64,000 nucleotides of DNA, taken from the IMG/VR virus record IMGVR_UViG_3300031576_000001, positions 186,001 through 250,000 of that record. One strand, given 5' to 3'. The notes under the pieces are model-generated. The model was not told the DNA's origin. It saw only the letters and a program-made list of their open reading frames with translations, and searched no databases. Position numbers and translations under genes: made by a program. Below are positions 67-60,564 of the stretch, piece by piece; positions within the stretch are counted from its first letter, which is position 1; the number at the start of each line of letters is the position of its first letter.

Positions 67-663
67 ATGAGATACCGAGTCCTCCTTGCTGTTACCCTCT
101 TCGCCCCCACCGTGCTCGCCCAAGACCCTGTGCAAACCGAGAACCCCGCGGCTTGTACGTCGGACAGTGTTTGCATACCCAGGGAGGATCTAGCTGTTTT
201 CGTTCAACTTTTGAAAGAGCGGCAGTGCTTGGTACGCACCAAGCCTGAGATTACCCTCTCGCCCATCCCGCTGGTCATTGACCGACAGGGTAGAGTCTAC
301 GGAGAGACAAAGACCACCCTACTCATACAATGGTGTAACTTTGAGATTACAGGGGGTGGGCCCGTCAAGATTGACGTGGCGGTACAGGATGAGCCCGTGC
401 CCCCACCACCCAAGCCGTCCCTCTGGCAGCCCGCGCTAAGGCTAGGCGTGGGCTACACAGTGCAAGCCTCTTGGGATGCTTTCTTGCTAGTCTCCCCTCT
501 GGCGTACCGGGGCGTGAGTCTCAACGGTCACGCTGGGGTGCGCTCCATAGGTGGCGGTTTGGGCTACGGTGTAACCTCTTACGGAGGCTTTTACGCTGGG
601 TACAGCTACAGCTACGAGGGTAAGCACGGGGCTACGCTGGGCGTATACGGCCGGCTCTGGTTA
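67..663 (+). CDS. Secreted / outer-membrane protein with C-terminal beta-strands
   Basis: N-terminal signal peptide MRYRVLLAVTLFAPTVLAQ, Pro-rich linker, Gly/Tyr-rich amphipathic strands. Ends GATLGVYGRLW (beta-signal-like) at in-frame TTA 661-663; the standard-code end is 717. Confidence 0.6.
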
Positions 664-674
664 GTCCACCCCGC

Positions 675-1298
675 TAAGAGGGTGCTACCGACTAGAAAAG
701 CGTCTTCACCAAGGTAGCGCTCGTACAAGGCGCTTAGCTCGTCGCAGGTTTGCTGGACTTGACTCTGGTAACTCTCGTCGATGCGACAACCCCAGAGGTA
801 CAGCGACTTGTAGAGACCGTCCCTTGTCACGTTGTGGAGTGTGTTAGCCAGCGCTCCGTGCCCCAAGGAGTTACCAACCCCACCAAAACCGCGGGTAACC
901 CCCCTACCCAGCGTCAACTCGCAACGGTACACGGCACCCTCTTTGGTGACCGTCACTTTGGAACCCAGCCTGTCCCTATCGCCCTTAGCCCAGAGGGTAG
1001 CCAGACTTATCGCCAGGTGCTCCATCCCAGGCACGTTTCTCTTTTTGTCCAAGAGAACCCGTCGCAGTCTGTTCCATTGGCTTTCACTGATACGGTCGGA
1101 CCAGAAGTTGTCTGCATAAAACCTGTCCCCCAGGTGCTCAAGGAACGCCTCTCGGTAGGACGCCCCGTTGGTTTTCCGCACCGGACCCTCTGCAAACCGA
1201 GCCGTGAGCGAGAAAAGCCCGTTTCGTTCCTGGCAGGTTAGCTGCCAGTCCCTCTTGACGTTGTTTATCACGATGGCTGTGCTCAAGTAATCCAGCAT
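675..1298 (-). CDS. Hypothetical protein
   Basis: ORF 612..1316. ATG at 1298; the first in-frame TTA (675-677) removes the overlap with the convergent gene. Confidence 0.6.
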
Positions 1299-1339
1299 GG
1301 CGTGTGGGGTCTCCAAAAGGGGTTCTGCACGGCTTTGCC

Positions 1340-1657
1340 ATGGTGGTACACCTTTTCCCGGCAGCTAGGGCTGTGCAACGCCGTATCGTAGCAAGATGGG
1401 TAGACAAGGGCACGCGAAAGCTGTCACGAGAGGTATACCGTCGCATCGGGGAAGACCCGCAAAGCGCTCAGTACCTCTCCGGGCTTCTACGGCGTCAAGC
1501 TGGTGACGTAGTGTCACTCCCCCCCTACGACCCCGCCCCGTTCAAGGAGATCGTAGACACTTGCCTCATGGTGACTGACCGTGACCCGGCGCGACTAAGA
1601 GACCTTGGATCAGCCTTGGACAGCCTGGCGCAAGCTGGGGCTAAAGCTACCGGGTGA
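1340..1657 (+). CDS. Hypothetical protein with RIVARW leader-like motif
   Basis: ORF fills the gap between two minus-strand genes; N-terminal QRRIVARW resembles the RVAxRY motif. Confidence 0.5.
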   Translation: MVVHLFPAARAVQRRIVARWVDKGTRKLSREVYRRIGEDPQSAQYLSGLLRRQAGDVVSLPPYDPAPFKEIVDTCLMVTDRDPARLRDLGSALDSLAQAGAKATG

Positions 1658-1702
1658 CAGCGGTGACGGGTGACAGCACGGTTTGCGGTATCTGCCGCGA
1701 GC

Positions 1703-2911
1703 TAAGCTCCAGATGTAGCTGAGGAGCCGGAAGAACATGCGCGAGACAAAGCCCTCTTCCTCGACGGGGCTTGGCGTCACGGGCGAGGGGGCGTCGTACA
1801 CGACCGGGGGTTCCTCTTCGGGTTCAGTCTGGACGCTGGGTTCCGTGGTCGTCACGCTCGGGGCAACCAAGGTGACGTGGCTCACGTAGAGTTTGCCGTC
1901 CCTACGGACCTCTTTGTTGGACACGGCGGCACCGAGGCGGGTACCGATGATGTGCGGGTGCGTACCGAAATGTGACGCCATACCCTCGACCGTGCTACCC
2001 TTCTCGCCCAGCGTGGAGAGGTAGGCAACGAGGTCATTCTTGGTGGGCGTGGGGAGTACGACGCCCGGGAGGTGACAGACGCCCGACGTGACCACGATGG
2101 TGCCCTTTTCGGTCAACGATTGTACCGCCGAGAGGTAATCGTTGCCGCACACGCCGAGGACAGCGACCGAGGAAGGCTGCTTGGTGATGAGGTTAAGCAC
2201 GTTGCACTCCGTCTTGGTCATGACCGGCTCACCCTTCGGGTCCCTCGTCGGGCTGGCGACGGTGAGGGACCACAGTTTGCCCTCGACGGTGACCTGACCT
2301 TCACGCTGCATGGCTCGCAGTTCCGTGAGGACGACGGCGCGGGCGCGGTGGACGCACTTGTTGATCTGGATCACGGAGAGGGCGTATGGCTGCGCCATGG
2401 TCAGCGCTTCCGTGATCTTGGTACGGAGCCACGCTGGTTTGGTGGCCGCCTTGGGCGCAGAAGTCTTTGGGCTCACGGAAGGCGCCGGCTTCTTGGGTGC
2501 TTCGGGCTTCCAGCCGATCCGACCGTTCCGCACGAGGAGACCCTTCAAGACCAGCAGCGTGGTGGCGACATACCGCTGGCTCTGGGTCGCCAGGGGTGCC
2601 TTGTTGAGGACGCGCACCTTGCCACCCACCCAAGCCAGCACGGTCAGCTCGTTGGGGGTGAGGTAGGGGGCGGGTACCCGGTCACCCTTGCTGCGGTAGT
2701 ACTCGGCAAGTTGGTCCAGGGTACACTCTCCCTTCTCCCGCCTGCGGTGCGACACCCCGTCATAGGTGCAGGGGATGCCCTCCTTGTGGAGGTTGTAGAC
2801 GAGGGTGAGCAGCGGGGCGCTGTCCGCGATCAAGGTTACCGGCCTCTCCTGGGGGGGCGCCTCGGTCCCTGGGGTGATGTCGTGGATGATGTGTGTGCGG
2901 GGGTTGTCCAT
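1703..2911 (-). CDS. Hypothetical protein, probable tandem winged-helix DNA-binding domains
   Basis: Repeated wHTH-like units (e.g. LSVIQINKCVHRARAVVLTELRAMQREGQVTVEGKLW). ATG 2911 lies 11 nt from GGTGTA; ends at TTA 1703-1705 (standard end 1610). Confidence 0.55.
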
Positions 2912-2922
2912 GCCTTGTTCTG

Positions 2923-2949
2923 TACACCATCGCTCCATTAAAAGGTGTA
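2923..2949. promoter_or_regulatory. Back-to-back divergent GGTGTA promoter elements
   Basis: TACACC 2923-2928 is 11 nt from the minus-strand ATG 2911; GGTGTA 2944-2949 is 12 nt from ATG 2962. Confidence 0.6.
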
Positions 2950-2961
2950 GGTTACCCTGGC

Positions 2962-5900
2962 ATGACTGAGAAACCGTCCGTGTACGACAGGCTCAAGCTA
3001 GCCAGGCAAAACCCGCAGTTCAGCCTGAAACCTACCCCCACCCTCACTGTTGCTGTCACCCCTACTTGTGAGCAGAAAGCCGCCGTTACCCTTCGTCCGT
3101 ACCAAGCCGTGGGCGCCTATCACCTCTTGGTGCAACCACGGATGGTCCTCGGGGATTGCTGCGGCTCCGGCAAGTGCGTCACGGAGGACACCCTTCTCCG
3201 TACCGACCGGGGCTGGCTACCCATAGGGGCACTGGCACCCCCCCAAGAGGTAGACGAGGGATTTGCCTCGTTTACCCAGGTACCCCCCGCAGTCTTGGAC
3301 GGCATGAACCTGACCCCACCTAAGAGGTTCTACCACGGGGGACTACAGGCGTGCCTCACGGTCACGACCGCTTACGGTTACCGTGTCACTGGAACCAAGG
3401 CTCACCCCGTTCTGGTCTGGCGGGACGGCTCCCACCAGTTCGTACCCCTTGGGGAACTAGAGCCTACAACGGACTACCTCTGCGTGGATCGTACCCCCGT
3501 ACCCTTTCCCCCCGACCCGGCGCTACCTGCCCCGGTACAGAAGCACCTCCAGGCGCCGACGCACCTTGACCCGGATCTTGCCTCTCTCCTGGGTTTTTGC
3601 GTGGCAGAGGGACACCTGAACGGTACCAGTTTGCGCCTGCGCGTCTCCTCTCCTTTTAAGAGGGGTGTGGTAGCCAGGCTCATGGACCGCCTCTTTGGGT
3701 GGCGTGAGCCTGGCTACCACCCCCAAGAGATCCGAATCTGTCGCAGGGGCGTGGTCCGTTTCCTAGAGGCTTGTGGGTTGGATTTGACCTGTAATCAAGA
3801 CCGAGTGGTCCCCTGGTCTGTCTTGCAGGGGAGCCAGGCGTCGGTGTCTGCCTTCCTCGCTGCTATTTTCGAGGGTAAGGCCAGTATCAGCCCCGAGGGG
3901 AGGATTGAGCTACGTACCTCTTCGCGCCCGCTAGCTCAGACGTTGCAAGTGATGCTGCTAGGGTATGGCATTGTGTCGAGTCTGCGTGAGAAGACCGCCA
4001 TACACGCCAGCAAGTACAGCTTGAAGATCGGCGGACCCTCGTCGCGCATTTTCCGAGATGAAATTGGGTTTTTGTCCTTTGAGAAGCAAGACTACCTCCG
4101 GGCAAAGACCAACCGAGGGGAGCATTGCAACCGCGACCTTGTGCCTGGCTGCGAGGGGCGCCTCCCTGAGTTGGTCGCCCTTCTACGCGAGAGAGACCCC
4201 CAGTGGCTCAACAAGAACGTGGTACTCAGAACCCGTGTTCAAACGATAAAGACCGGGAAGAGTCACCCCTCTTATGCCTTCCTCGACCGATTCTTGGCTG
4301 AGTGCCGGGCTCATGGGTTGCAGGACACGGAAAGCTACATCGAGCTAGAGAGTCGGGTGGAGGCTCACTACTTCTACGACCGGATCGAGACGGTAACGCC
4401 GGGGACCGCGGACGTGGTGGACCTGGAAATGCCCGACCCGTGTCACTCCTTCGTGGGTAACGGGCTGGTGTGTCACAACACGGTGCAAACGGTGGCGGCG
4501 CTGTCTTACCTGTGGGACCGCCTAGAGCCCACCCACAAGGTCATCGTGGTCTGCCCCAAGTCCGCCCTCTACCAGTGGCAAAGTGAAGTCGCCAGGTTCA
4601 CAGCGGGCGTTACCGTGTACGTAGCCTCCGGTCCAAACCGCAAGAAAGCCTACGAGGCGTTCTTCTCTGCGGACCCTACCAAGAGCAAGTCTCTTTTGCT
4701 GGTAGGGTACGCCTCGCTAGCTCGGGACTGGCACCAAGGCGCAGGCTCCGTCAAGGTCAACGGTAAGCTCACGGTCACGCAGGGCTACCTGGAGGGTCTG
4801 GTCACCAAAGCCGTTACGGCTTACCCCCTCTCTTTGGTGCTTGATGAGTGTTTTGAGTACCACACCCCCGTCTTGCTCGCTGATGGCACAAAGCAGCTTA
4901 TTGGGCAGATCGCAACCAATAAGTTGGCTGTGCGTGTGCTGTCGTGGGACTTCAGTACAGGGCAAGTCGTACAAAAGAATGTGATCGGCTGGTACCGGCG
5001 TCCTCTGCACTCTAAAGGTTCACTGTTGCGTGTGGACTTTCGGTTTGCAGGTACAGTCAATGTTACAAAGAATCATAACTTCTACCGCACCAACGGAGAG
5101 AAAGTACCAGCGGTTAAACTTAAGGTGGGAACCAAAACCGCCGCCTATCTGTGCAACACCCCTTCCGACGTGCAAGCGCAAGTGGTGTACGGTGGACTCC
5201 TTGGGGATGCTTCAGTAGCAGGGCGAAAGACCCTGCTATGGGGGATCGTGTTTGGGCACAGCTCAAAACAAAAGGAGTACCTCCAGTTCAAGAAGACAGT
5301 TTTGCAAAGTCTGGGTGTGTCAGAGGACACGCACCACCAAACAGAGTACCAAACCGGAGAACAGCAAATGGTGCATTTCCGTTTGAACGGAAATGCCGCG
5401 ATAACCTCAAAGCTATGTGACGCAGGAATTTGGTCTCAGGATTGCAAAACCATAACTGCGTCATTCCTTGACATGGTGAACCCCTGGGGACTCGCTATCT
5501 GGTATGGGGACGACGGTAGCCTGTCCACATTTACTAGGTCGGATGGGAGTAAGCGCTACAACATAACCCTCCATACAGAGGGTTATCACCGGTTTGAGGT
5601 GGAATTGCTTGCAGGTTGGCTCCGGTGGCGATGGGGGGTGTCAGCGTTGGTGAAGATTAGAAAGAACAAGAGGTCTGCTTGCAAACCGTATTACGTGCTA
5701 TACTTGCCTCACGAAGCGGCTCAGAACTTTCTGAACTTGCTTCCTGGTGCCTTGCCTGGGGTAGCTTACAAGTTTCCTGGTAAGAAGGTCATCGATCCTG
5801 CAATTCTTGACTTGACCCCTAAAGCGTCAATTGTGGTGGATGAAGTGATTTCCGTCTCAACGTGCCTCCCCCCTGTTAACCCCAAGCTGAAGACACAGTT

Positions 5901-7050
5901 TGTTTACGACCTGGAGGTGGAGGGTACTCACAATTACTTTGCCAACGGCGCGCTTGTTTCCAACTGCACCGCTGTGAAGAACCCTCAGACCAAAACCCAT
6001 GAGGTCTGCAAGCAGCTAGCCGGACAAGCCAAGAGGGCTTACGGGTTGACGGCCACCCTCTTGCGCAACTCACTCATGGATGGGTACGGGATCTACAAGG
6101 TCATTCTCCCTGACCTCTTTCGCAACAAAACCCGGTTCATGGAGGACTATTGTGTAACCCGCACCATGTTTCTGGGGCGTAAGCAGGTGCCCCTCATCGT
6201 GGGGTACAAGAACCTCTCCGTATTTCGCAGCACGATTGACCCGTACTTTCTGGGGCGTCGCAAGGAGGACATATCCAAAGACCTACCCGTGCTCACCTCA
6301 CGCGATGTCGAGGTCACCCTGTCCAGCGAAGAGGCTACCAAGTACGACGAGGCGTTGACGGGCGTACTGGACTTGATGAGCGGGGAGCGCAGGGATTACA
6401 CGGAAACCGTGGCCATGACCTCTTTGCTTTACTGCCAGCAAATTGCTAACAGCCTGGCTCTCATTGACGCTGACCCTACAGGTTGCACGCTAGCGGTTTC
6501 CTCCAAAGAGGAGGCTCTCATTGACCTCTTGACCGAAGGGCTCGACGGAGAGAAGGTCATTGTGTACACCCGCTTTGAGAAGGGTATCGAGCGTCTACGC
6601 GCTCTCCTCCAGAAAGCCGGAGTCAAGACCACGCGCATCACGGGCAAGGAGAAAGACCACGAGAGGCAGAAGAACCGGCTAGCCTTCCAAGAGGGGGACA
6701 CGTCGGTCATTGTCATCACGGACGCCGCCAGCGAGGCACTTAACCTCCAAGCCGCTGCCGCCATGGTCTTCTTTGACTCCCCGTGGTCCTGGGGGCATCT
6801 CGTGCAGCTTATTGGCCGGATGGTGCGTATCGGTTCCCCTCACCGGGGGGTTGTGGTGTATCACCTCCTGGCTACGCTGCCTGGCAAGAAAAAGAAGACG
6901 ATTGACCATTACGTGGTAGACACGCTACGCCGCAAGAAAGGACTGATTGACCAAGTGATCGGGGAAGCTGCCGTGGGCGCCTTGGTTTTCGAGGGTGACA
7001 TGGGGGTCGTGCATGACCTCATGGGGAAGATCCGTGACGACAGCCTGTGA
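2962..7050 (+). CDS. SNF2-family helicase with two inteins
   Basis: LRPYQ, Walker A GDCCGSGK|T, VVCPKS, Walker B LVLDE|CT, LTATLLRN, C-terminal EALNLQAA and QLIGRMVRIG. Confidence 0.9.
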   Translation: MTEKPSVYDRLKLARQNPQFSLKPTPTLTVAVTPTCEQKAAVTLRPYQAVGAYHLLVQPRMVLGDCCGSGKCVTEDTLLRTDRGWLPIGALAPPQEVDEGFASFTQVPPAVLDGMNLTPPKRFYHGGLQACLTVTTAYGYRVTGTKAHPVLVWRDGSHQFVPLGELEPTTDYLCVDRTPVPFPPDPALPAPVQKHLQAPTHLDPDLASLLGFCVAEGHLNGTSLRLRVSSPFKRGVVARLMDRLFGWREPGYHPQEIRICRRGVVRFLEACGLDLTCNQDRVVPWSVLQGSQASVSAFLAAIFEGKASISPEGRIELRTSSRPLAQTLQVMLLGYGIVSSLREKTAIHASKYSLKIGGPSSRIFRDEIGFLSFEKQDYLRAKTNRGEHCNRDLVPGCEGRLPELVALLRERDPQWLNKNVVLRTRVQTIKTGKSHPSYAFLDRFLAECRAHGLQDTESYIELESRVEAHYFYDRIETVTPGTADVVDLEMPDPCHSFVGNGLVCHNTVQTVAALSYLWDRLEPTHKVIVVCPKSALYQWQSEVARFTAGVTVYVASGPNRKKAYEAFFSADPTKSKSLLLVGYASLARDWHQGAGSVKVNGKLTVTQGYLEGLVTKAVTAYPLSLVLDECFEYHTPVLLADGTKQLIGQIATNKLAVRVLSWDFSTGQVVQKNVIGWYRRPLHSKGSLLRVDFRFAGTVNVTKNHNFYRTNGEKVPAVKLKVGTKTAAYLCNTPSDVQAQVVYGGLLGDASVAGRKTLLWGIVFGHSSKQKEYLQFKKTVLQSLGVSEDTHHQTEYQTGEQQMVHFRLNGNAAITSKLCDAGIWSQDCKTITASFLDMVNPWGLAIWYGDDGSLSTFTRSDGSKRYNITLHTEGYHRFEVELLAGWLRWRWGVSALVKIRKNKRSACKPYYVLYLPHEAAQNFLNLLPGALPGVAYKFPGKKVIDPAILDLTPKASIVVDEVISVSTCLPPVNPKLKTQFVYDLEVEGTHNYFANGALVSNCTAVKNPQTKTHEVCKQLAGQAKRAYGLTATLLRNSLMDGYGIYKVILPDLFRNKTRFMEDYCVTRTMFLGRKQVPLIVGYKNLSVFRSTIDPYFLGRRKEDISKDLPVLTSRDVEVTLSSEEATKYDEALTGVLDLMSGERRDYTETVAMTSLLYCQQIANSLALIDADPTGCTLAVSSKEEALIDLLTEGLDGEKVIVYTRFEKGIERLRALLQKAGVKTTRITGKEKDHERQKNRLAFQEGDTSVIVITDAASEALNLQAAAAMVFFDSPWSWGHLVQLIGRMVRIGSPHRGVVVYHLLATLPGKKKKTIDHYVVDTLRRKKGLIDQVIGEAAVGALVFEGDMGVVHDLMGKIRDDSL
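3175..4479 (+). mobile_element. Intein 1 in helicase Walker A, LAGLIDADG-type endonuclease
   Basis: Starts CVTEDT after GSGK and ends VCHN before T; TKAHP block; LLGFCVAEGH and FLAAIFEGKA motifs. Confidence 0.9.
4849..5964 (+). mobile_element. Intein 2 in helicase Walker B, LAGLIDADG-type endonuclease
   Basis: Starts CFEYHT after LDE and ends LVSN before C; VYDLEVEGTHNYFANG, GGLLGDAS and LAIWYGDDGS; lower GC than flanks. Confidence 0.9.
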
Positions 7051-7822
7051 GCGTTGTAAAGGCACGGGTTTCATACCGGTCACCCCTGACCTGAGCAAGG
7101 AGTGCATTTGCGCGTACTCTCGCAGGGTAGAGAAGCACCTTGGGCTAGAGCTTGCCTCAGCCGCAAACCACCCCAACGGTCCCCTTTATCAGTACGAGGC
7201 GGGCGTAGTGACGGTGGACCGGACCCGGGACAACCTCATGCTCTCTGGGGCGTGGGAGGCTATTCTGCCGCACTTGAAGTGGTGCTTTCTGTGCAAGGGG
7301 CTGGGTTTTCGCTTCCTTGAGGTCACGGACGAGCGGATCAAGTCGGTATGGTTGGGCAGCGAGGCATACCACAAGAAACAAGCCAAGAAGCGGGAGGACG
7401 GGGACACCTATAACGGGCTAAGAGACCTCTTGGAGCCTCCCGACTTGGTGCTCTTGCGTTTGGGCTTTCTGGGTTATGCCAACGTGGCGATGCCGGGCGT
7501 GCTCAAGGAGTCCTTGCTTCTCCGGTACGCTCAGAAGAAGCCTACGTGGCTTGTAGAAGACCCCACGATAGCCCCCTTTGCGCCAGGGCACCACGCCTAC
7601 AGTGATGACGTGGGTACGTACATCGCACAGCACTTTCAGACGGTGACGTTCAAGGCTGCACGTACAACGCCCACGGAGATAACCCTCTCCGAGGCTAGCG
7701 CCAAGGTGTTTGACCGTCCTCTCCCACAGAGCCCACAACGCAAGCCCAAGGCACAGCCCACGGAAGACCTGGCGGATATGTCTCAGTTTGGTGGTGGCAG
7801 CAAGAAGAGGAAGTGGAAATGA
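7034..7822 (+). CDS. Zn-finger plus degenerate DnaC/IstB-like protein (putative helicase loader)
   Basis: CERCKGTG...ECIC N-terminus; NLMLSG and PDLVLLRLG fall at P-loop and Walker B positions without the catalytic residues; directly upstream of DnaB. Confidence 0.5.
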   Translation: MTTACERCKGTGFIPVTPDLSKECICAYSRRVEKHLGLELASAANHPNGPLYQYEAGVVTVDRTRDNLMLSGAWEAILPHLKWCFLCKGLGFRFLEVTDERIKSVWLGSEAYHKKQAKKREDGDTYNGLRDLLEPPDLVLLRLGFLGYANVAMPGVLKESLLLRYAQKKPTWLVEDPTIAPFAPGHHAYSDDVGTYIAQHFQTVTFKAARTTPTEITLSEASAKVFDRPLPQSPQRKPKAQPTEDLADMSQFGGGSKKRKWK

Positions 7823-52358: not shown

Positions 52359-52382
52359 CCCGGTCGCGGTACCGGCAAGGGG

Positions 52383-54665
52383 TAAGATGGCGATCTTGAC
52401 CTCGGAGAGGGCGAACGTGGCTTGTACGTCCCCCAGCTTGGCGGTCTTCAACGTCAGCTTGCAGTTGTCCAGGGAGGTAAACTCCGAGAACCATACCTGC
52501 CCAAGCACGGTGGCGAGCTTGATCTGTGCGATTTCCCTGAGAAGCTCCCTCGTCTCACGGGTCGCCTCCTCGGCGCGGGCGCGTAGCCAGGTCAACCCTT
52601 CCTCGGGGTACTGGAGGGCAACGTCCTTGATGGCAGGCTCCATCAGCAAGGCGCCAGCGTTACCCTTACCCTTGGCCAGCTTCTCCACAGCCTCTTTGAG
52701 GGAGGGCAACGCTGAGAGCCCCTTGAGACTCACGGTAAGCTCGCTTCCGATGTAATGGTCCGTGGACTCCTTGGTCAGCGCCTTGGGTGCGAACCCGCCG
52801 TAATCCGTGATCCCTTGCTCTTTCAACCAAGATGAAACCTCTTCGCCGTGGATAGCGCTGTACCCCAGGCTGGTCTTGCCCCCACCGTAGTCCTTGAGGT
52901 ACCCCTGGTAGACCTTCTGCCGGGCGCGAGCCTCGGTAAGCTGCATGACCTTCTCGCCCAACGTCTTGGCTGAGAGGGTCTTGGTCATGGAGCGGTTGAC
53001 CACGGCAAGGGAACCCAGGTCAAGAACCGCCTCGACCTCAAAGTCCAGCTTGGTCTCGGAGAGAACCGGTACCCCTTTGGCTTTCAGGTTGGCTAGCGTC
53101 TCGTGCGAGACCTTGACCGGCAAGCTCTTGACATTGACCAGACCGTCACGGATGATGCTGTAGTTCCGGTGAATGTAAGTAGGGAACTTCTCGGGGAGGT
53201 TGCCCACCATGGACGGGGGGAGCCGCTTGGAAAGGTCCACGGTCCCCCACACCTTGACCTGTAGGCTCACGTTCGGGCGATCCTCGTTGTAAACGAGGTT
53301 TTCGATGGTCGAGCCCGCTTCCTTCTCAGCCTCATCGGGCACGAACGTGAGAGGCTCTGGCTTGCTGGCGACAATGCTTGCAATCTTCTCTTGCAAGGTT
53401 TTGACAGCGGCTACCGTGATCTTGGGCTTGCTCATCTGAGCTTGCAACGAGGCGATCTCAGCCGTCTCCTCGTCCGTGAACCGCGAAGAGGCATCCTCCC
53501 GTGCGCGCCCGATCCGGGTGTACTTCCACTCGGGGTGGTACGGCAGAACCCGGTTGGTGCTGTCCGAGGCGAGGATACTGAGCACGTCCAGCACGGTCAC
53601 GGCGTTGTCGTCGGGTACCTTGGTGGGGTCGTAACCCTCTTGGTAGCGAGCGCCCGCGTCAAAGGCTGCCTTGGTCACGTCCGCCTGAAACTCGCTGTAC
53701 TTCTGCTTTCCGAAGCACTTGGCAAACCGGGTAATGAAGCGCACGTCACCCGTGAACTTCAACAAGGGGAGCACCACGTCGGGCTGCATCCGGCTTGAGA
53801 ACAGGCTAATCGCCGCGTACACGGGGGGCAGTACCGCCTCGTCAGGCTTCCCCGTGGTCGGCGCACCCCCCTTGCTCGCAGAGAGGTAGTACACGGTGGT
53901 CACGTCGGGGGGTACCGTGACGGAGCCCCCCTCTACGCCAAACGTCAGCACGTCACCCTGAGAGAGGGCAAAGGCCACGTTACCTACCGCGTCCCCGGAG
54001 AGGGTCAGCGTCTTCTTGGGGGTCGCCGCGACCTTGCGCCCGAAAACCTTGGTGATTTGTGGCTCGTAAGCCGAGAAGTCCTCCGTGAAGAGGAGGGCAC
54101 CCCCCAGCTTGGCTGCCATCGCAGAGAGGAGGGAGCGGTCAGCGTAAAACCCCCACTCGACCACGGCGGCACTATCCGCCTCAATCTTGCCCAGGGTAGC
54201 CAGGATCTTCTCTCGGCTCCCCTGGTTGTCGTAACCGTCGCTGAGGAACAGGAGGGCTACTGCCTCCCCGGGGTGCGCCTTCCTTAGCCTGGCGATCACG
54301 CGCGCCGCTTCCTCCAAGGGGTCTTGGAAGCCTGTGAGCCCTACCGGCTTGAGCCAGCGGTCCACCGCAGCGTTGACCTTGGCCAGGTCTTTGAGGTTAC
54401 GTAGCGCCACGTCCTCGAAGATGACCCCACACTCCCCCCTGCCGGAGAACCAGATCAGGCTCACGGTGTCCTTCTCGCCCACCAGCGAGGGAAACTTGCC
54501 CTTGATCTGCGCTCGCATGTCGGGCAGCGCACCGCTCATTGAGCCGCTGCAATCGACAACCAGCAAGTGATTCGTCGGGGGCGCTTTCGCTGGGGTGCTG
54601 TCTTTGCCCGCGCTAAAGGCTACCAGCGCGAGTCCGTTACCAAGAGGCGTTGTTGTCGGTTTCAT
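52383..54665 (-). CDS. vWA-domain protein
   Basis: MIDAS VVDCSGSM, GLT, FLSDGYDN. The only in-frame TTA follows EVKIAI (standard end 52194). Confidence 0.85.
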
Positions 54666-54726
54666 CGTTGGGCTAAGGTACACCCCAAACGGTAGGACCG
54701 TAGACCCAAACTATGTCCTACCCTCG

Positions 54727-55053
54727 TCAGTCGTTGTTGAGGGCGTCTGGCACGCACCCCAGCTTCTTGTACACTCTGGCAAAGAAGGCTTCCACCTCTT
54801 CGATGGTGTTGCCCTCCTGGGTTGCCAGGCGAAACGACATCGGGTTTCCCGCGTCAGACGGGAGGTAGAACGTGACCTCCCACGCGAAAGAGGTAGACAT
54901 CCCAAAAAACTGCCATTGCTGGCACTGTAGGAAGTAGAGCTTCTTGTCGTCACCCCACACAGTCTTCAGAAACAGAGCGACCTTGAAGGCATCCCGGTCA
55001 TAGTATACCCGGTAGCCCGTGGCTTTGAGGTTTTCTGGCGTAATAGGGGTCAT
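54727..55053 (-). CDS. Hypothetical protein
   Basis: GGAG then ATG (MTPITPEN). Confidence 0.55.
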   Translation of the reverse strand: MTPITPENLKATGYRVYYDRDAFKVALFLKTVWGDDKKLYFLQCQQWQFFGMSTSFAWEVTFYLPSDAGNPMSFRLATQEGNTIEEVEAFFARVYKKLGCVPDALNND

Positions 55054-55087
55054 GTGTGTCTCCGTAGGTGCCACTCTTGGCGAGGCG

Positions 55088-55390
55088 TCAGGGTACAACG
55101 CAGAAGTTGTCTGGCTCAGAGGGGCACGTCTCTAGGACCAAGGTGTGAAAGACCCCTACCTTGTCTTGGTAGGTCAGGGTCGCCGCAGTCTTGCTGACGG
55201 GGGTGACCTGTGGCTTGTCGATACCATTGGTTGCCGCCCAAACCAGCACCCGCTCTTTGGTGACGGAGAGTACCTCTGGGGTCCGGATAGCCTCCCAATC
55301 TCGGTTTGTTCGCGAGATTTTGCGCACCGCTAGCCCGGTAACCAACAGGGTGCCTGCGCAAACGAGCAGCAGGACTGCACGATCTATCAT
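55088..55390 (-). CDS. Membrane-anchored hypothetical protein
   Basis: GGTGTA-N10-ATG; N-terminal TM helix. Confidence 0.55.
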   Translation of the reverse strand: MIDRAVLLLVCAGTLLVTGLAVRKISRTNRDWEAIRTPEVLSVTKERVLVWAATNGIDKPQVTPVSKTAATLTYQDKVGVFHTLVLETCPSEPDNFCVVP

Positions 55391-55420
55391 GCCCGGAGCT
55401 TACACCCTCTTGGTCTTCTG

Positions 55421-55639
55421 TCAGGGCTTAGGGGGAAGGCGCCGCACGACCCTGCGAAGCGCCTCTACCGTGGCGCTAGCGGGATTGTTGGGGTCAAAGC
55501 CGCTCTCGGTTTTCATCCAGGGGTAGGGTCGCCCGTTCTCTTCGTGGTACCCGAAGGTCAAAGTGACGCTGTTCAAGGCGGACAGCCCGAGGCTCTCGCG
55601 AGCCTCTTCAATCAACTCGCGCATTTGCAGGGGAGTCAT
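55421..55639 (-). CDS. Hypothetical protein
   Basis: AGGAG ribosome-binding site. Confidence 0.5.
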   Translation of the reverse strand: MTPLQMRELIEEARESLGLSALNSVTLTFGYHEENGRPYPWMKTESGFDPNNPASATVEALRRVVRRLPPKP

Positions 55640-55657
55640 GGTTATCTTCTCCTAGGC

Positions 55658-56011
55658 TCAGGGGAACTGGGCGACGCCCTTGAAGGTGTAGATCGGACCC
55701 TCGACGGCGCCCACCGTCACGGTCGCGGGCTTGCTCAGCTTGCGCAACACGACCCGGTTGAGGGGGTCGCCCGTGTTGAGGCTCACCTTGTCGCCGCTCA
55801 GGCGAGCCGAGGACATCGCCCACATGACGTGGGCGGGGGTGCCGAAGACCTTGAAGGTCACCCGGTAACCCATGCCAGGCTCGAAGGTGGCGCCCTTGAT
55901 GGTGCCTCGCATACCCTTGCGGGTCGAGACGGCTTCGCAGCCCTTTTCCACGATGAAAAGGGTGCCGACGAGGCGCGCGGGGTCAAACTTGGGGGTTTTG
56001 GAGGTGGTCAT
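55658..56011 (-). CDS. Hypothetical protein
   Basis: Starts at a CGTA-class promoter. Confidence 0.6.
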   Translation of the reverse strand: MTTSKTPKFDPARLVGTLFIVEKGCEAVSTRKGMRGTIKGATFEPGMGYRVTFKVFGTPAHVMWAMSSARLSGDKVSLNTGDPLNRVVLRKLSKPATVTVGAVEGPIYTFKGVAQFP

Positions 56012-56020
56012 AACCCCTCT

Positions 56021-56045
56021 TACGCTCACCCTGGCGGGCGACTCA
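56021..56045 (-). promoter_or_regulatory. ECF-type promoter TGAGTC-N15-CGTA
   Basis: Followed by AGAGGGGTT-ATG; 3' half identical to the 43773 copy. Confidence 0.7.
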
Positions 56046-56116
56046 CGGAAAAGATGTCGGGAGGGGACACCTTTTAATAGAAAGGACTCGACGATGGGAG
56101 TCACCCTTTACCCTTG

Positions 56117-57709
56117 TAACCGAGAGGAGGCTAGGTGAACGATGTCCCACGCGGGCTCGCCTGTGTAGACCTCAGCCTCTAGGGGTGTGAAGTGCCCCAG
56201 TAGGAGCCTTGCCTTCTTGCTGGCAGAAACCTCCAAAGACTCGATGGCTGCCATGAGGTTCAGCAAGACCTCTGACGACTCGTTCTTGAGGGGACCGTCA
56301 ACAAGGTGGTTCAGCAAGTCCAGCGCCTTGGGGTTGAGGGAATAATGCGACCGCCCCCCTTTGAGCGCCGTGAGGTTGATCTTTACCCCGAGAGGCTTGC
56401 TGGTGATGGGGGTCAGTCGCCAGTCGTCGCGCAGGGCGACAACGGATTCTGGTTTGAGGGCTACCGCCTTACCGTTGAAAAACATGGTTGCCGTGTACTG
56501 TGTGGGTCTCACGCCCTGAGCCACGTCAAACATGATTTCCACCTGGATCTTGCGACCCGCACCTTCAGCCTCAGCAAGGAAGCCCGCGCCAGCCAGGGCG
56601 TCTTTCAAAGAGAGGGTCTCTTTCTCGGTCCTCACGTCCTTTGCGGTGAGCGTAGTCTTGGTGGGGCTAAGGACGGCAAACTTCTTAGGTACCTCGAAGT
56701 CCCCAGGTAGACTCTTGGCGAGCGCCAGCATGACTTTCGGAATCGCTGAGAGGTTCTTGGCTACCCCGGAGACTGCGAGAAAGGACTCCTCGGCTACGGT
56801 CTTTAGCCCCGTGGCGCTAACACTGGGGGTTTCATTGTATCGCACCCCACAGAGCACGCCGTACTGTTCGCCCTTCTTACCCACCGCTACGAAGATTTGC
56901 GCGGTTTGGTCCACGGTTGAGCCCTCCCTTCTCAGCGTTTTCCAGCCGTGGTCGGCTACCACGCCCCATTCCACCCCGGAGGGGGGGTTGTAGAAGGGCA
57001 CCCCTGGAATGGTGGTGGGTGGCTTCTTACTGTTGCGATAGTGGTTGACGGGTACCGCAAAGAGAGCCACTGTATCCTGCAACGCGTCAACCACACCCTC
57101 TTTGGTTGTAAAAGTGCGGACTACCTGTGGGACTGACGACAATTTACCTGAGCCTTGGAGGGAGTAAGCCCATTTGGACAGATCCCCTCTTGGCTGAAAC
57201 ACTTTGAGGAATAGATTCCCGTCGTAGGTATTACCAGCGATGCGACAGGCTACACCTTCGTTGATCAGTTCGATCTTGAAAAGCGACCACGGCACAAGGT
57301 CTGGCATTTGTGCCGTAAGATAGCGTAGCCAGTGGGGGGAAGCCTCTTGGCATACCCTTAGAAGATCCGTAGCTGGGGGCGGTTGCTGGGGTCGCGGTGC
57401 GGGGCGCGTGTACGGTGACTGTGGACGGGGAGCGTAACCACCCCCACCCCCGCTGTACTCGGGCGTAGCGCGCTGTACCCCCGTTAGTACGTCCTTGGCC
57501 ACGTTGACCTGGACCATCTTGCTTGGGTCACCACCCCGGTCAGGGTGGTTCTCAATCGCCTTGCGCTTGTACGCCTTCTTGATGTCCTCTTCGGTGGGTG
57601 TACCCGTCAAACCTAGCAAAGCCAGCGCTTCGCTACGCTTCATGGCTTGGACCAGGCGAGCATAGAGGGTTCTCTTGTAACGGCGAACAAGTTCGTTTGG
57701 GTCAAGCAT
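56117..57709 (-). CDS. J-domain (DnaJ N-terminal) protein, long
   Basis: IKKAYKRKAIENHPDRGG...VNVAKDVL. TTA three codons before the TAA at 56108. Confidence 0.8.
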
Positions 57710-57814
57710 GGCTTCTCATCACAGAGGGGGATAAAAACTACCTTTTTCCCCGAGAGTCTAAAGTAAGATGCCGCGCTACCTCTTGGCTATCGGCGTGCTA
57801 CACTCCTGCACACC

Positions 57815-58114
57815 ATGAAAGCTCTATTGATCCTGTTGGTTCTGCTCACGGCGTCGAGCACGGCTTACGCTGACATTATGCCAGGGAGGTTCCCCCGCTA
57901 CAACCCGCCACCCCGTTATATACTGTGGCAGGAGCCCCCGGCGTGGGATGACCACTCGCCGGTCCCTAGTGCGCCTCTACCTGGCACGCCTCAACCCTGG
58001 GAAGTACCGGTACCTGCAACGCCCCCTGCCCCTGCGGGGGCGCTGGCGCTGGTCATGCTGGCTCTAGGTGCTACCGCCCTCTTGGTTACCAGGCGCAACG
58101 CAAAAGCAGCCTGA
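57815..58114 (+). CDS. Small secreted Pro-rich protein with C-terminal TM anchor
   Basis: Signal peptide ending AYA-D, Pro-rich body, TM helix followed by RR. Confidence 0.65.
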   Translation: MKALLILLVLLTASSTAYADIMPGRFPRYNPPPRYILWQEPPAWDDHSPVPSAPLPGTPQPWEVPVPATPPAPAGALALVMLALGATALLVTRRNAKAA

Positions 58115-58150
58115 CACAGAGGGTGTCCTTCTATTCCCTACCTGACAGGT

Positions 58151-58531
58151 ATGCACCATCGGGTTGTCGCACAGTACGTTCGCAAGCTCTACGCCCGCCT
58201 CGTCCTGGCAATGACCACCCAGGAAGCCAAGAGGCTCTTGGGGTTGACCTCAGCCTACCCGACCCAAGAGGAGGTAAGCAAAGCCTGGAAACAGAAGGCG
58301 CGTGAGAACCACCCCGACCTGGGGGGTAGTGACGCGGTGATGGCTCAGATCAACGCAGCCAAGGACGTACTTCTCGGGCTAAACCAGCGATTCACCCCGG
58401 ACCCTACGTGGTCTACTGGGGGTCCGCAACAGGCTCAAGCCACGCCAGCGCAGGGGTGGTCATGCAGAACCGCCCTCCAGCACGACCCACAGGGGATAGC
58501 CAGAGAGAACAGTTTCAATACCTCCGGGTTA
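58151..58531 (+). CDS. J-domain protein, short
   Basis: VSKAWKQKARENHPDLGG...INAAKDVL. TTA at 58529-58531; 3' end uncertain. Confidence 0.7.
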
Positions 58532-58887
58532 GAGAGCGCCGCAACCTCTTCCTCTGAGAGGTTAGCCAGGGGCAGCGCCATCGCGGAGCCCCACGGAGCC
58601 GTCACGACAAGGTTGGCACCCTCCAGCGTCACGGTAGGGTCAGGTTGGCTTGTGTCGTAATTGTAAGCGTCGTGGCAGTAGTCTCGGGCGAGGTCGTCCA
58701 GCGAAGTGTACCCCCCGGCGCCCGCACACTTCTCGACCCACCACCCCAGGTCCGTCGCGTGCAGCCGGAAAGCCGTACCGTTGCCCAGCGTCAACTTGAC
58801 CATCGCCTCCCTCGCGTTAGGTGGGTCTACAGAGACCACCACCTGACCCACCAAGAGACCCCTTAGCTCCTCTAGCGCGTTGCTCAT
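58435..58887 (-). CDS. Hypothetical protein
   Basis: GGTGTA-N11-ATG. Confidence 0.55.
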   Translation of the reverse strand: MSNALEELRGLLVGQVVVSVDPPNAREAMVKLTLGNGTAFRLHATDLGWWVEKCAGAGGYTSLDDLARDYCHDAYNYDTSQPDPTVTLEGANLVVTAPWGSAMALPLANLSEEEVAALSNPEVLKLFSLAIPCGSCWRAVLHDHPCAGVA

Positions 58888-59108
58888 GCCGCCTGCCTTA
58901 CACCAACCACCCCCGAAGAACCACCACGTACCCTCTTGGTTTCCATACAGACCCATATGGAACTTCCGGGTAGGTCTAAGATGACCCTGCCACTTTTTAC
59001 GATGTTTTTATCACTGAGCCCCGAGGGGAGGACTCCAGTGTGCATCGACAGAATTTCTCCATACACTTGTAGGTCGAGGTGGGTGCAAGGAGACCCGGAA
59101 GAAAGTTG

Positions 59109-59133
59109 TGAATCGTGAGGCTAGCCAAGCGTA
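59109..59133 (+). promoter_or_regulatory. ECF-type promoter TGAATC-N15-CGTA
   Basis: Followed by GGAGGGGTT-ATG 59143. Confidence 0.7.
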
Positions 59134-59142
59134 GGAGGGGTT

Positions 59143-59442
59143 ATGAACGCCACCGAAACCTGCCGCTGCCCCCTCTGCTGTACCCCCTTTGACAACCACG
59201 ACGGGTTGTTTGACCTTTGCGAGGGTTGCTCCGGGGTGGTGACCTCCGACCTGGACAGCATCGCCCTCTTCGCGGCTGAGGGGGTCTCCGATTACCTCTA
59301 CGAAGAGGTTCCCGCCCTGTGCCCCTGCCTCTCGGTGTGCCCGGAGTGCGCGGAGCCTACCGCTCCCGACGAGTGGTCCCCGCACAGCGTGGCGCCGCTG
59401 TGCATCAACTGCGACCACTACCCTTTCGCGGCGGACGCCTGA
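59143..59442 (+). CDS. Cys-rich Zn-finger protein
   Basis: Multiple CxxC pairs. Confidence 0.55.
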   Translation: MNATETCRCPLCCTPFDNHDGLFDLCEGCSGVVTSDLDSIALFAAEGVSDYLYEEVPALCPCLSVCPECAEPTAPDEWSPHSVAPLCINCDHYPFAADA

Positions 59443-59469
59443 CCGCTCCGCTCAGCGAGGAGAACCCCC

Positions 59470-59682
59470 ATGGACATCACGATTCGCGTTTCCACGCTGG
59501 ACGGGTCTAATCGCACCCGCAAGTTCAAGACCCTCGCGGGGGCTCGCAAGTTCGCACAGAACCGGGTTGGGGAGCACCCCGAGGTCAGCGAGTTCTTTCG
59601 GTACGCGGTAGGCGCCTGGGGTGACGTGAAGGTGAGCGTGACGGGTTGCACGCTCGCTGACCTCTTTCCGCCCAAGCCCTGA
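59470..59682 (+). CDS. Hypothetical protein
   Basis: GAGGAG site; RKFKTLAGARKFA. Confidence 0.6.
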   Translation: MDITIRVSTLDGSNRTRKFKTLAGARKFAQNRVGEHPEVSEFFRYAVGAWGDVKVSVTGCTLADLFPPKP

Positions 59683-59706
59683 GCCGGGCGGGTGTATCTA
59701 CGCCCC

Positions 59707-60072
59707 ATGCCCGAATTCGTAACCAAAACGTGGACCCCCGTGGACCACAGTTGCCGCCAGGGGCGTTCCCTGGCTGGCCACTGGGAGGTCCACACCACGG
59801 ACAGTCCAGAGAAGGTCCATCTGGACCAAGACGCCTCGTTTCCCTGGCAGGGGTTCCGTGAGCCTGTGGTGCGCTCCTACAGCATACAGATCCCCGAGAA
59901 GCTCGCCTATGCCTTCGAGGAGGCAATCAACAAGCACTTTCCAGGGACACTGGACGTGCTCTACGTTTGCCCGATTTACACCAAAGAGGAGGTCCGGTAC
60001 GATTACGACCCCTCCAACGTGAGGCTAGCTTGGTTTTGCCAGGGTTTTGGAGCAGCGGTATCGAGCTACTGA
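59707..60072 (+). CDS. Hypothetical protein
   Basis: GGTGTA-N10-ATG. Confidence 0.55.
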   Translation: MPEFVTKTWTPVDHSCRQGRSLAGHWEVHTTDSPEKVHLDQDASFPWQGFREPVVRSYSIQIPEKLAYAFEEAINKHFPGTLDVLYVCPIYTKEEVRYDYDPSNVRLAWFCQGFGAAVSSY

Positions 60073-60075
60073 TAC

Positions 60076-60097
60076 CGCTATCGCGTTTTCGATAGCG
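60076..60097. terminator. Stem-loop between convergent genes
   Basis: CGCTATCG-N6-CGATAGCG. Confidence 0.55.
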
Positions 60098-60114
60098 TGT
60101 CACCTAACCTGGCG

Positions 60115-60564
60115 TAAGCCCTTGACAATCAAGGTAAAAGAGCCAAGCGGAGAGGTAACCTGCATGGTGCGCTCTCCTGGGGGGGTGTAGACATCGAGGG
60201 GGTAAGCACCCTTGGGTAGGAGGTTACCCAGGTGGTAGTGAAGCTCACCCCACACCCAAGAGGCAAGGCTAATCTCGGGGGGCTTCTCGGTCTTGGTACT
60301 GTCCTCTTCCCAGACTTGCACCGTGGGCTCAGGGTTGAAGGTGGGTGGGGGGTTTATGGTGACCTGGAACCGGTAGAGGTGGGAGCCCTCTGGGTAGCCC
60401 TGTGGGCTAAGGGGGAGGTCACGCTCCAAGTAGAGGTTCTTCTCCGTGGTTGCCCAGTTGTAGGCGAGCCAGGCGGTCATCACGCGGGGAGTGTACTTCT
60501 CTGGGTCTTCTCCGGGTTGGGCGACTCTCATGCGGTGTGGGTGCTGTGTGCTCGTATCGGTCAA
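60115..60564 (-). CDS. Hypothetical protein
   Basis: TTA at 60115-60117, five codons before the TGA at 60100. Confidence 0.5.

Follow-up and report, generated by a model that had tools for sequence, protein, structure and literature searches.

Why does one short, asymmetric DNA word recur hundreds of times on both strands of a huge phage recovered from a cave metagenome, and what reads it? We first asked whether the excess is real, then what the true word is and how its copies are placed, and finally which known systems it resembles. The word appears to be a signal read by a DNA-handling enzyme, much as some phages accumulate the Chi recombination signal of the host; however, no reader protein was identified.

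Excess of the word and its independence from coding

In the 64,000-nucleotide stretch analyzed here (the window, positions 186,001 to 250,000 of the IMG/VR record IMGVR_UViG_3300031576_000001), the octamer CCAAGAGG, or its reverse complement CCTCTTGG, occurs 76 times, whereas dinucleotide-preserving shuffles gave 3.84 +/- 2.06 copies (largest 9). The whole record, a virus contig of 322,633 bp encoding DnaB, PolA, inteins and 38 tRNAs, contains 262 copies, a 13-fold excess; CCAAGAGG is its most frequent octamer, it ranks first of 30,426 octamers under Markov orders 0-4 and second at order 5, and the next most frequent octamers share 7 of its bases. Of the 262 copies, 124 are on the plus strand and 138 on the minus strand; relative to genes, 97 lie on the sense strand, 122 on the antisense strand and 43 outside our gene calls. 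The window is the densest part of the contig, with the 200-240 kb bins having the highest counts.

The observation made in the sequence-only reading is thus confirmed. It had counted at least 74 copies against 2-3 expected, on both strands and in frames encoding QE, KR, LL and SW; these are the frames that we found genome-wide (QE 64, KR 30, LL 78 and SW 29, with a few PRG/PLG). A one-base-longer variant that it had listed, CCAAAGAGG, has 13 copies against 0.9 expected; the listed positions are right within one base, except that the one given as 3630 is really 3690, and three copies had been missed (6503, 36083 and 61690). This variant is simply CAAAGAGG, a member of the same family, preceded by C.

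That reading had also named beforehand the result that would discard its claim, namely that the enrichment vanished under a shuffle preserving codons and dipeptides. We shuffled synonymous codons within each gene, which keeps protein, dipeptides and codon usage, and the excess did not disappear: 97 copies were observed against 25.3 +/- 4.2 on the sense strand, and 122 against 13.6 +/- 3.5 on the antisense strand, a 4- to 9-fold excess. In addition, the C located three bases before AGAGG was present at 52-70% in all six phase/orientation classes and at 60% in non-coding DNA, against baselines of 19-37%. The closest relative found (55% PolA identity), which shares gene order and has near-equal codon usage, reached only O/E 2.8.

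We considered whether the word could nevertheless be a by-product of composition, such that codon-pair usage, the RBS-like AAGAGG or the avoidance of restriction palindromes squeezes the sequence into a few permitted words. The genome is indeed extremely constrained, with GGCC at O/E 0.13 and 26 of 64 hexamer palindromes almost absent; the commonest frames of the word use frequent codons (CAA GAG / CTC TTG) that are reverse complements of each other; AAGAGG is the core of a conserved RBS element; and other GC-rich phages show strand-balanced codon-pair words, for example CCTCGACG in the phage labelled L003. However, besides the shuffle and the C at -3, which is enriched across a two-base gap, the relative shares both the codon usage and the heavy palindrome avoidance but lacks the motif, and only 21 of 277 genes have the word within 25 nt upstream of the called start. 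Inside called genes, the sites of the wider family described below are 526 on the sense strand and 566 on the antisense strand, unlike Shine-Dalgarno sequences, which lie 5-12 nt upstream of start codons on the sense strand. We regard this explanation as very unlikely.

Shape of the motif and distribution of its sites

The octamer is only the peak of a wider, degenerate and gapped motif, C-N-N-A-G-A-G-G (CNNAGAGG), with 1,333 copies in the contig against about 272 expected and a graded preference of CVAAGAGG over the others. Position 1 is strictly C, position 2 is C>A>G>>T, position 3 is A>>G,T,C, positions 4-6 (A-G-A) are strict, and positions 7-8 are G with A partly tolerated; one-off variants are enriched at positions 2, 3, 7 and 8 but not at 4-6, a graded tolerance as for a binding energy. 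There is no information outside the 8 positions (at most 0.16 bit in the flanks). This corresponds to roughly one site per 0.5 kb on each strand, and one strong CVAAGAGG site per 1.2 kb on each strand. The features of the window are collected in the table.

Table. Motif sites, motif-free gaps and candidate reader genes in the 64-kb window.
Position	Strand	Feature	Observations
467..60263		Exact copies of CCAAGAGG, the optimum form	37 on the + strand, 39 on the - strand; about 1 per 0.84 kb; first copy 467-474, last copy 60256-60263
1..64000		Degenerate family C-N-N-A-G-A-G-G	304 sites (about 55 expected), of which 148 are CVAAGAGG (about 10 expected)
3925..6028	+	Longest motif-free gap of the whole contig (2,104 bp)	In the intein-bearing middle of the SNF2 helicase gene (2893-7050); the extein parts on both sides carry 13 sites
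32189..33632	+	Motif-free gap (1,444 bp)	Covers most of the intein insert of the N6_N4 DNA methyltransferase gene
9324..9896	+	Candidate reader: small protein with a DnaG-type primase zinc ribbon	Directly after the DnaB-like helicase gene (7813-9378); homolog present in the relative
29320..30420	+	Candidate reader: D12-class N6-adenine DNA methyltransferase	No homolog in the closest relative
31387..33942	+	Candidate reader: N6_N4 (beta-class) DNA methyltransferase	Interrupted by an intein
44269..46554	+	Candidate reader: 761-aa protein with a type IB topoisomerase (TopIB) catalytic core (aa 193-393)	In the relative only the C-terminal part (aa 480-752) has a homolog
48769..49671	-	Second D12-class adenine methyltransferase	Shared with the relative; probably the GATC (Dam-type) enzyme (inference)

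The sites of the family are balanced between strands (654 plus and 679 minus) and evenly spread, with no switch point; the skew per 20-kb bin lies between -0.24 and +0.26, a weak drift that follows gene orientation. The record is linear and about 68% complete, so the true ends of the genome are unknown. Density is the same in coding and non-coding DNA and in genes with and without a homolog in the relative, but it drops to 1.08/kb in inteins, against 3.06/kb in their exteins (P 1.3e-4), and towards zero in low-GC islands.

Such a distribution could also be left by a molecular drive, in which a biased repair or gene-conversion process (VSP-like) or the mutational bias of the host converts near-matches into the word without any benefit per site. 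The equal density in coding and non-coding DNA and in conserved and accessory genes, low only in recently arrived DNA, looks like slow amelioration, and amino-acid identity to the relative is the same at motif codons (51%) as elsewhere (52.8%), so the sites arise by silent changes. However, a correction drive should deplete its substrates, the one-off variants, whereas the variants at positions 2, 3, 7 and 8 are enriched 2-11 fold and transition variants show no specific deficit. A Vsr-like gene was not specifically sought, and none turned up among the roughly 50 proteins scanned. Nor does a drive predict the orientation-specific repulsion of neighboring sites described next, and we consider it unlikely.

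Neighboring sites on the same strand avoid each other within about 200 bp. Same-strand pairs make up only 34% of pairs at 11-80 bp (z -5.8) and 44% at 80-200 bp (z -3.0), and reach parity beyond that, whereas control words show no such effect. Opposite-strand pairs at 11-80 bp are at or above expectation; apart from 17 overlapping divergent pairs, spacing is Poisson-like without preferred inverted pairs. The same-strand spacing rule and the intein holes are simple tests that could be applied to other genomes.

Candidate readers and possible functions

The interpretation offered in the sequence-only reading was partly supported. It was right that the signal acts on the DNA and not on the proteins, that the DNA belongs to a phage, and that the word matches no known iterated word, but the octamer that it described had to be widened to the gapped motif. 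Among the functions that it had proposed (a DNA-organising protein, modification, packaging or recombination), our evidence does not single out one; it favors a strand-read signal of recombination/Chi-like or replication type over packaging, because there is no polarity, and it argues against a symmetric architectural site, because the spacing effect is orientation-specific.

Our preferred explanation, held only tentatively, is that C-N-N-A-G-A-G-G is a protein-recognition word kept by selection throughout the resident DNA of this phage and read on one strand by an enzyme that travels along DNA. The most likely function would be Chi-like, a word that switches a helicase-nuclease, either the RecBCD/AddAB-type enzyme of the host or a phage-encoded counterpart, from degrading DNA to sparing or recombining it, such that any broken end of phage DNA, facing either way, would be protected within a few hundred bases. 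The equal and even supply of both orientations is what such protection would need, and the same-strand spacing fits diminishing returns for a second site read in the same direction. The avoidance of restriction palindromes indicates that sequence-level adaptation to host nucleases is a habit of this phage. What the analysis demonstrates is a DNA-level, strand-symmetric, graded (position-weight-like) signal with orientation-specific spacing, private to this phage among the genomes compared and scarce in mobile inserts; that selection rather than drive is the cause, that the reader translocates and that the function is Chi-like are our inferences, and none of the evidence excludes other strand-reading machines.

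Some observations do not fit this view easily. The phage has its own RecA, Rad50-like ATPase and PD-(D/E)XK nuclease, and in lambdoid phages Chi abundance goes with the lack of a recombination module (PMC12315714). No AddA/RecB-like enzyme was found in the phage, its large UvrD-family (SF1) helicase resembling Rep/UvrD/PcrA; as no host is known, the key property of Chi, recognition by a RecBCD/AddAB-type enzyme, which it attenuates, and enrichment in the host chromosome, is untested. In addition, the word is less G-rich than known Chi words.

Another strand-reading machine is the primase. In this view, the DnaG-type primase of the phage would recognize an unusually long template word (3'-G-N-N-T-C-T-C-C-5') and start a primer pppAGAGG, and the word would have to be frequent on both strands for lagging-strand synthesis. 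The zinc-ribbon protein encoded next to the DnaB-like helicase, the equal supply of both strands, the distance between strong sites, which is of Okazaki-fragment order, and a strict core that starts with a purine, as primers do, are in line with this proposal, and same-strand but not opposite-strand spacing is what redundant start sites on one template would give. However, DnaG, T7 and T4 primases read 3 bases (up to 5 with the extended T7 sites) with the cryptic base directly adjacent, whereas here the conserved C lies three bases from the core; none is known to need genome-wide enrichment, and our search on this point found nothing. The relative has a 44%-identical zinc-ribbon protein but no enrichment, and we consider this possibility unlikely.

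We also asked whether the word could be the target of a phage DNA methyltransferase or of another sequence-specific DNA-binding protein (an epigenetic self-mark, an architectural protein or a TopIB site), enriched because the bound or modified state benefits the phage. The window encodes three adenine methyltransferases, one of which, like the TopIB catalytic domain, is absent from the relative that lacks the motif; poxvirus TopIB needs a pentapyrimidine, (C/T)CCTT, and the other strand of the motif is the pentapyrimidine CCTCT; the graded tolerance fits a binding site; and HIP1 of cyanobacteria is an over-represented word tied to methyltransferases (PMC4390886). One-strand methylation of an asymmetric site could also favor nearby sites of opposite orientation, although this is an inference. 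Against this, recognition sites of modification enzymes are normally not enriched and no benefit of enrichment is known; phages with about 50%-identical TopIB (L164, L165) and a phage with a 51%-identical D12 methyltransferase (L166) lack the motif; the poxvirus pentamer is a different sequence, and no enrichment of CCCTT-type sites is known in poxviruses; and a simple architectural site should exclude neighbors of either orientation, which is not what we observed. Sequence searches of solved structures gave no informative relative for either methyltransferase, and no modification data exist. This reading seems doubtful.

A more novel possibility, which we also regard as improbable but which is not excluded, is that the word is a phage-private self signal read by the replication or recombination machinery of the phage itself, for example a primase or helicase loader with an 8-base specificity or a phage-encoded Chi-like nuclease control. 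It would let a huge phage with unmodified DNA tell its genome from that of the host, and its specificity would differ between related phages. Genome-wide iterated words are among the few cases where a short DNA sequence reveals a genome-scale mechanism; almost all those known belong to bacteria, and Chi is known experimentally for only about five species. This case, in an uncultivated huge phage, is an unusually clean one. If the word is the Chi of the host, it gives a sequence-only handle on the host and on an unknown Chi; if it is read by phage proteins, it would be a new kind of viral self-recognition.

Comparison with other iterated words

The closest precedent is the accumulation of Chi sites in phages P1, LLS and Pseudomonas phage MD8 (PMC12315714). 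There, as here, an asymmetric octamer is the single most frequent octamer of the phage, at about 1 per 1-2 kb, the next most frequent octamers differ by one base, and codon usage does not explain the excess. The over-representation under several Markov models used as a criterion for Chi (Buton & Bobay) is fulfilled in the phage genome, although a host core genome was not examined. In contrast, Chi is polarized with the leading strand in bacteria, and Chi-rich cos/pac phages show a strongly one-sided orientation towards the packaging end, whereas here orientation is balanced, and our motif has a two-base degenerate gap and about 1,300 weak and strong sites. The word is not related to any known Chi: none of the Chi words of E. 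coli, Pseudomonas, Bacillus, Lactococcus, Staphylococcus and Haemophilus is enriched beyond 3-fold, and the layout (fixed first base, free second base, strict 3' part ending in GG) resembles the Haemophilus Chi GNTGGTGG, with which it shares only this layout and the terminal GG.

As to enrichment in a host chromosome, the 5.1-Mb bin holding the relative (Actinomycetota by one marker gene) has 198 copies against 249 for the control word, and among 301 genomes of its phylum, four of them unpublished (G002, G049, G089 and G121 in our numbering), none shows a comparable density, the best having 186 copies per 1.3 Mb; as the real host was never identified, these counts do not tell whether the host chromosome carries the excess. 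More distant relatives of the phage lack the enrichment as well.

The DNA uptake sequences of Haemophilus (USS) and Neisseria (DUS) are also short asymmetric words, equally used in both orientations at about 1 per kb, inside genes in the cheapest reading frames and absent from recently acquired DNA. They belong, however, to competent bacteria and arise by uptake bias, are 9-12 bp with informative flanks, and often form inverted pairs as terminators, whereas here the carrier is a lytic-type huge phage, flanks are uninformative, inverted pairs are not preferred and the USS and DUS words are absent. The translocase-guiding octamers KOPS and SRS (GAGAAGGG) are asymmetric, purine-rich and read by a translocating motor, but they are strongly skewed towards one strand per replichore, switching at origin and terminus, and they are not enriched here. 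HIP1 (GCGATCGC) is a highly iterated octamer spread through genes and linked to orphan methyltransferases, of which this phage has several; it is a palindrome, whereas our word is not, and it has 0 copies here. Finally, no longer conserved unit of the kind found in dispersed repeats (REP/MITE-like) surrounds the core; the only longer repeats, R1 and R2, are separate elements with about 17 and 6 copies.

Gene content of the contig and positions of its features

The record, of which the window covers bases 186,001-250,000, is a single sequence of 322,633 bp with 58.6% G+C, classed as linear and about 68% complete, and the only public sequencing run that holds it is a cave metagenome. The window encodes a DnaB-like helicase, a family A DNA polymerase (PolA), an SNF2 helicase, an AAA ATPase, a DnaJ-domain protein, a type IB topoisomerase (TopIB) domain and three DNA methyltransferases lying within 20 kb, one of them split by an intein. 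Elsewhere, the contig carries 38 clustered tRNA genes, a RecA, a Rad50-like ATPase, a PD-(D/E)XK nuclease and further inteins. It is a huge phage, whose nearest relative in a search of 5.8 billion proteins has a PolA only 55% identical. At least five genes contain inteins, several of them with LAGLIDADG endonuclease domains. The tRNA genes cover most amino acids, including the codons used by the main frames of the iterated word (Gln-UUG twice, Glu-CUC, Leu-GAG, Leu-CAA, Lys-CUU and Arg-CCU), and a lone tRNA with anticodon CTA (amber-reading) was called 'Pyl' by ARAGORN.

Positions of the features considered in the window and in the contig (labels beginning with L are stretches of the contig)
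Feature	Position	Strand
SNF2 helicase gene with two inteins	window 2893-7050	
Motif-free stretch in the SNF2 helicase gene	window 3925-6028	
D12 DNA methyltransferase gene	window 29320-30420	
N6_N4 DNA methyltransferase gene with intein	window 31387-33942	
Motif-free stretch in the methyltransferase gene	window 32189-33632	
Second D12 DNA methyltransferase gene	window 48769-49671	-
Gene for the protein with the TopIB catalytic core	window 44269-46554	
Gene-start cassette	window 43761-43778, 56009-56026 (reverse complement of gene starts), 59128-59145; about 17 copies in the contig	
Element of about 70 nt with GC-rich hairpin	window 58996-59013 and five other intergenic places in the contig	- (window copy)
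Intein-containing genes for the UvrD-like helicase, the class II ribonucleotide reductase and one unnamed protein	L044:964-5772, L042:973-3855, L043:631-3567	
tRNA genes (cluster of 38; lone tRNA with anticodon CTA)	L029:1209-11256 and L040:17803-17877 (contig 21,209-31,256 and 307,803-307,877)	
Low-GC island with TnsA-like endonuclease domain	L045:1110-4362 (contig about 99.8-103.4 kb)	

Abundance, anatomy and distribution of the iterated word

The word CCAAGAGG/CCTCTTGG occurs 76 times in the window, against 3.84 +/- 2.06 in dinucleotide-preserving shuffles, and 262 times in the contig, where it is the most frequent of all octamers; it ranks first of 30,426 octamers under Markov orders 0 to 4 and second under order 5. 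The nine-base form CCAAAGAGG has 13 copies against 0.9 expected. Genes were called with a self-trained codon model, which gave 277 genes covering 82% of the contig, and on that map 97 copies lie on the sense strand, 122 on the antisense strand and 43 outside genes, in the frames that had been named in the sequence-only reading. That reading had set its own condition for failure, namely that the enrichment should disappear under a codon- and dipeptide-preserving shuffle. We ran this shuffle on synonymous codons within each gene, which keeps the protein, the dipeptides and the codon usage, and it predicts only 25.3 +/- 4.2 sense and 13.6 +/- 3.5 antisense copies. When every octamer was ranked against that null, the same family filled the top of the list in both orientations, whereas the same procedure on the closest relative gave no comparable outlier. 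The observation that the octamer is highly iterated thus held, and the enrichment is real and acts on the DNA.

The octamer is, however, the peak of a wider motif. Single substitutions show that position 2 accepts C, A or G (262, 153 and 133 copies, against 30 for T), that positions 3, 7 and 8 are partly tolerant, and that positions 1 and 4-6 are strict. A full table of the three bases preceding AGAGG shows that every word of the form C-N-N-AGAGG is enriched 2- to 13.6-fold, while words starting with A, G or T are mostly near expectation (O/E 0.3-2.7). In all, 1,333 of the 2,075 AGAGG pentamers (64%) have C three bases upstream, against about 272 expected. This C is enriched to 52-70% in each of the three codon phases and in both orientations, and to 60% in DNA outside gene calls, the baselines being 19-37%. 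A dependency across a two-base gap that ignores reading frame cannot come from codon pairs or from word avoidance; a codon or dipeptide artefact was rejected, and a pure composition artefact is excluded as far as these tests go. The flanks carry no information, and no longer repeat unit was found.

Avoidance of restriction-type palindromes is extreme in this genome. Of the 64 hexamer palindromes, 26 have 0-5 copies in 322 kb, GGCC has O/E 0.13 and TTAA 0.16, and the avoided restriction-type palindromes of the window and the contig include GGCC, CAGCTG, CTGCAG, GTGCAC, GGATCC and CTCGAG. The relative avoids a partly different set (it keeps GGCC, AAGCTT and TCCGGA) and is 5.7-fold enriched in GATATC. 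TGATCA is kept in our phage (28 copies), whereas GGATCC, AGATCT and CGATCG are nearly absent (0, 1 and 0 copies), which is the pattern expected if GATC is N6-methylated, because only BclI-type enzymes are blocked by Dam methylation. A second, weaker family of TA-containing words is enriched in both orientations, CCTGGCTA/TAGCCAGG and GGCTACC contig-wide in the phage, and CCTGGATA/TATCCAGG and GGATATCC in the contigs of the relative (L008-L024); we have no explanation for this family.

Plus and minus sites are equal, with 124/138 for the octamer and 654/679 for the gapped family, and they are spread along the whole contig with no polarity switch, so that no replication or packaging polarity was found. 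The weak drift that was seen follows gene orientation, because antisense is slightly preferred (566 vs 526). This antisense abundance, together with the position of the sites, led us to reject a ribosome-binding site (RBS) as the explanation. A conserved gene-start cassette, CGTGAATC-N13-15-AGCGTAAGAGGGGTTATG, is likely a shared promoter, 5' leader or RBS, and its RBS core AAGAGG resembles the iterated word but has G, not C, at -3. Another conserved element consists of a GC-rich hairpin (GAGTCCCC...GGGGCTC) followed by TGATAAAAACATCGTAAA and TAGTGGCAGGGTCATCTTTGACC, and looks like a terminator-promoter cassette.

The density of sites is about 4.1 per kb in coding and non-coding DNA alike, and it is also the same in genes with and without a homolog in the relative (4.08 vs 4.03 per kb). 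Amino-acid identity to the relative is the same at codons inside sites (51%) as elsewhere (52.8%), so sites are made by silent choices, and the preferred phase (xxC CAA GAG Gxx and xxC CTC TTG Gxx) fixes only two amino acids, so it costs the proteins least.

Gaps between sites are Poisson-like, without preferred spacing, and Fourier analysis shows only the 3-bp coding period. There is one exception to this pattern, since neighbours on the same strand avoid each other: only 34% of pairs 11-80 bp apart lie on the same strand (z = -5.8 by permutation of strand labels), the figure being 44% at 80-200 bp (z = -3.0) and parity beyond that. Per strand, gaps under 40 bp are 2.8% against 8% expected, and seven control words of the same shape show no such deficit. 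Opposite-strand neighbours are not depleted. Among pairs of sites 3-8 bp apart, 17 overlapping divergent pairs form short palindromes such as CCTCT-NCGN-AGAGG (7 at offset 6 and 5 at offset 8, against about 1.4 expected per offset), whereas no convergent pair occurs within 10 bp; the convergent form at offset 8 would create the avoided GGCC. Nick sites of the T5 type are unlikely, because opposite-strand sites lie close together and even overlap.

The longest motif-free stretches fall in intein-bearing parts of genes, those of the SNF2 helicase, the methyltransferase, the UvrD-like helicase, the ribonucleotide reductase and one more gene. Four Pfam-delimited inteins hold 5 sites in 4.6 kb, against 19 expected (P = 1.3e-4), while the exteins of the same genes hold 3.06 per kb. 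Another hole is the low-GC island (0.49-0.52), which has a TnsA-like endonuclease domain and a DUF7487 protein, is almost free of the motif and is probably a recent mobile insertion. Mobile or recently arrived DNA therefore lacks the word; resident DNA has acquired it.

Relatives, candidate hosts and possible readers of the word

We then asked whether the word is present in related phages. Distant relatives, with PolA 24-45% identical, show nothing: no enrichment was found in the PolA-based loci L001-L003, in Tunturiibacter phage Tunturi_5 (L004), in the uncultured 485-kb phage LR745208 (L005) or in a further locus, L007. The closest relative lies on two contigs (205 and 127 kb, 332 kb in all; C1 and C4) of an NCBI bin (G001) and shares gene order (156 of 277 genes) and nearly the same codon usage, but there CCAAGAGG is only 2.8-fold over its own dinucleotide expectation, and C at -3 of AGAGG is 35%, near baseline. 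The rest of that 5.1-Mb bin is not enriched. A partial scan of IMG/VR for two copies within 30 bp returned chance or tandem-repeat hits only, and no other motif-rich viral contig was found in it.

The host was not identified either. Look-alikes in an endolysin atlas hint at Acidobacteriota, whereas a single scan of genome contigs matched only the peptidoglycan-binding domain, in unrelated phyla. The word was counted in 301 genomes of the phylum of the bin holding the relative (Actinomycetota by a Der GTPase), and none came near the density of the phage; four of those genomes are unpublished (G002, G049, G089 and G121) and no specific claim rests on them. Known iterated words are not enriched in the phage, and in the literature no paper was found that uses CCAAGAGG/CCTCTTGG as a motif.

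The graded tolerance by position looks like a binding-energy landscape, and the equal use of both strands, the even coverage and the orientation-specific redundancy point to a reader that scans one strand in one direction and for which a second nearby site adds little. The closest known case is Chi in phages, where one-off relatives rank next and codon usage was excluded by comparison with a related phage (PMC12315714), all of which parallels the present case. Chi words are known experimentally for only about five species and differ between phyla, so an unknown word is not an objection. We therefore favour, tentatively, a Chi-like signal, although orientation is balanced, the phage has its own recombination genes, the host is unidentified and no nuclease partner was found. 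The abundance of the word, its independence from coding and its layout come from the analysis itself, whereas its function is inferred and not shown; the interpretation in the sequence-only reading, that selection or a mutational drive acts on the DNA and that the octamer could be a site for one of several functions, was partly supported. Iterated functional oligomers spread through a genome are a known class, and what is new here is the word, its gapped and graded, strand-balanced layout with same-strand spacing, and its carrier.

There are rival explanations. Primase start sites, on a template reading 3'-GNNTCTCC-5', would explain the same geometry, and a primase zinc-ribbon gene sits in the window, but no primase is known with such a long, gapped specificity. 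A repair drive fits the amelioration pattern; it does not fit the enriched one-off variants or the spacing rule. For a methyltransferase, TopIB or other binding site there are candidate genes, and the D12 methyltransferase at 29320-30420 and the TopIB domain are both absent from the relative, but there is no known reason for enrichment. When co-occurrence was tested, phages with a protein about 50% identical to TopIB or to this D12 methyltransferase lacked the motif, which is weak evidence, because specificity may differ at that distance. Sequence searches of solved structures (PDB) for the methyltransferases and the UvrD-like helicase, and PHROG scans of window proteins without a Pfam match, were uninformative about specificity. 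The TopIB catalytic core (aa 193-393) is fused to a C-terminal part (aa 480-752) that is 58% identical to a protein of the relative, which lacks the TopIB part, and this looks like a lineage-specific domain fusion.
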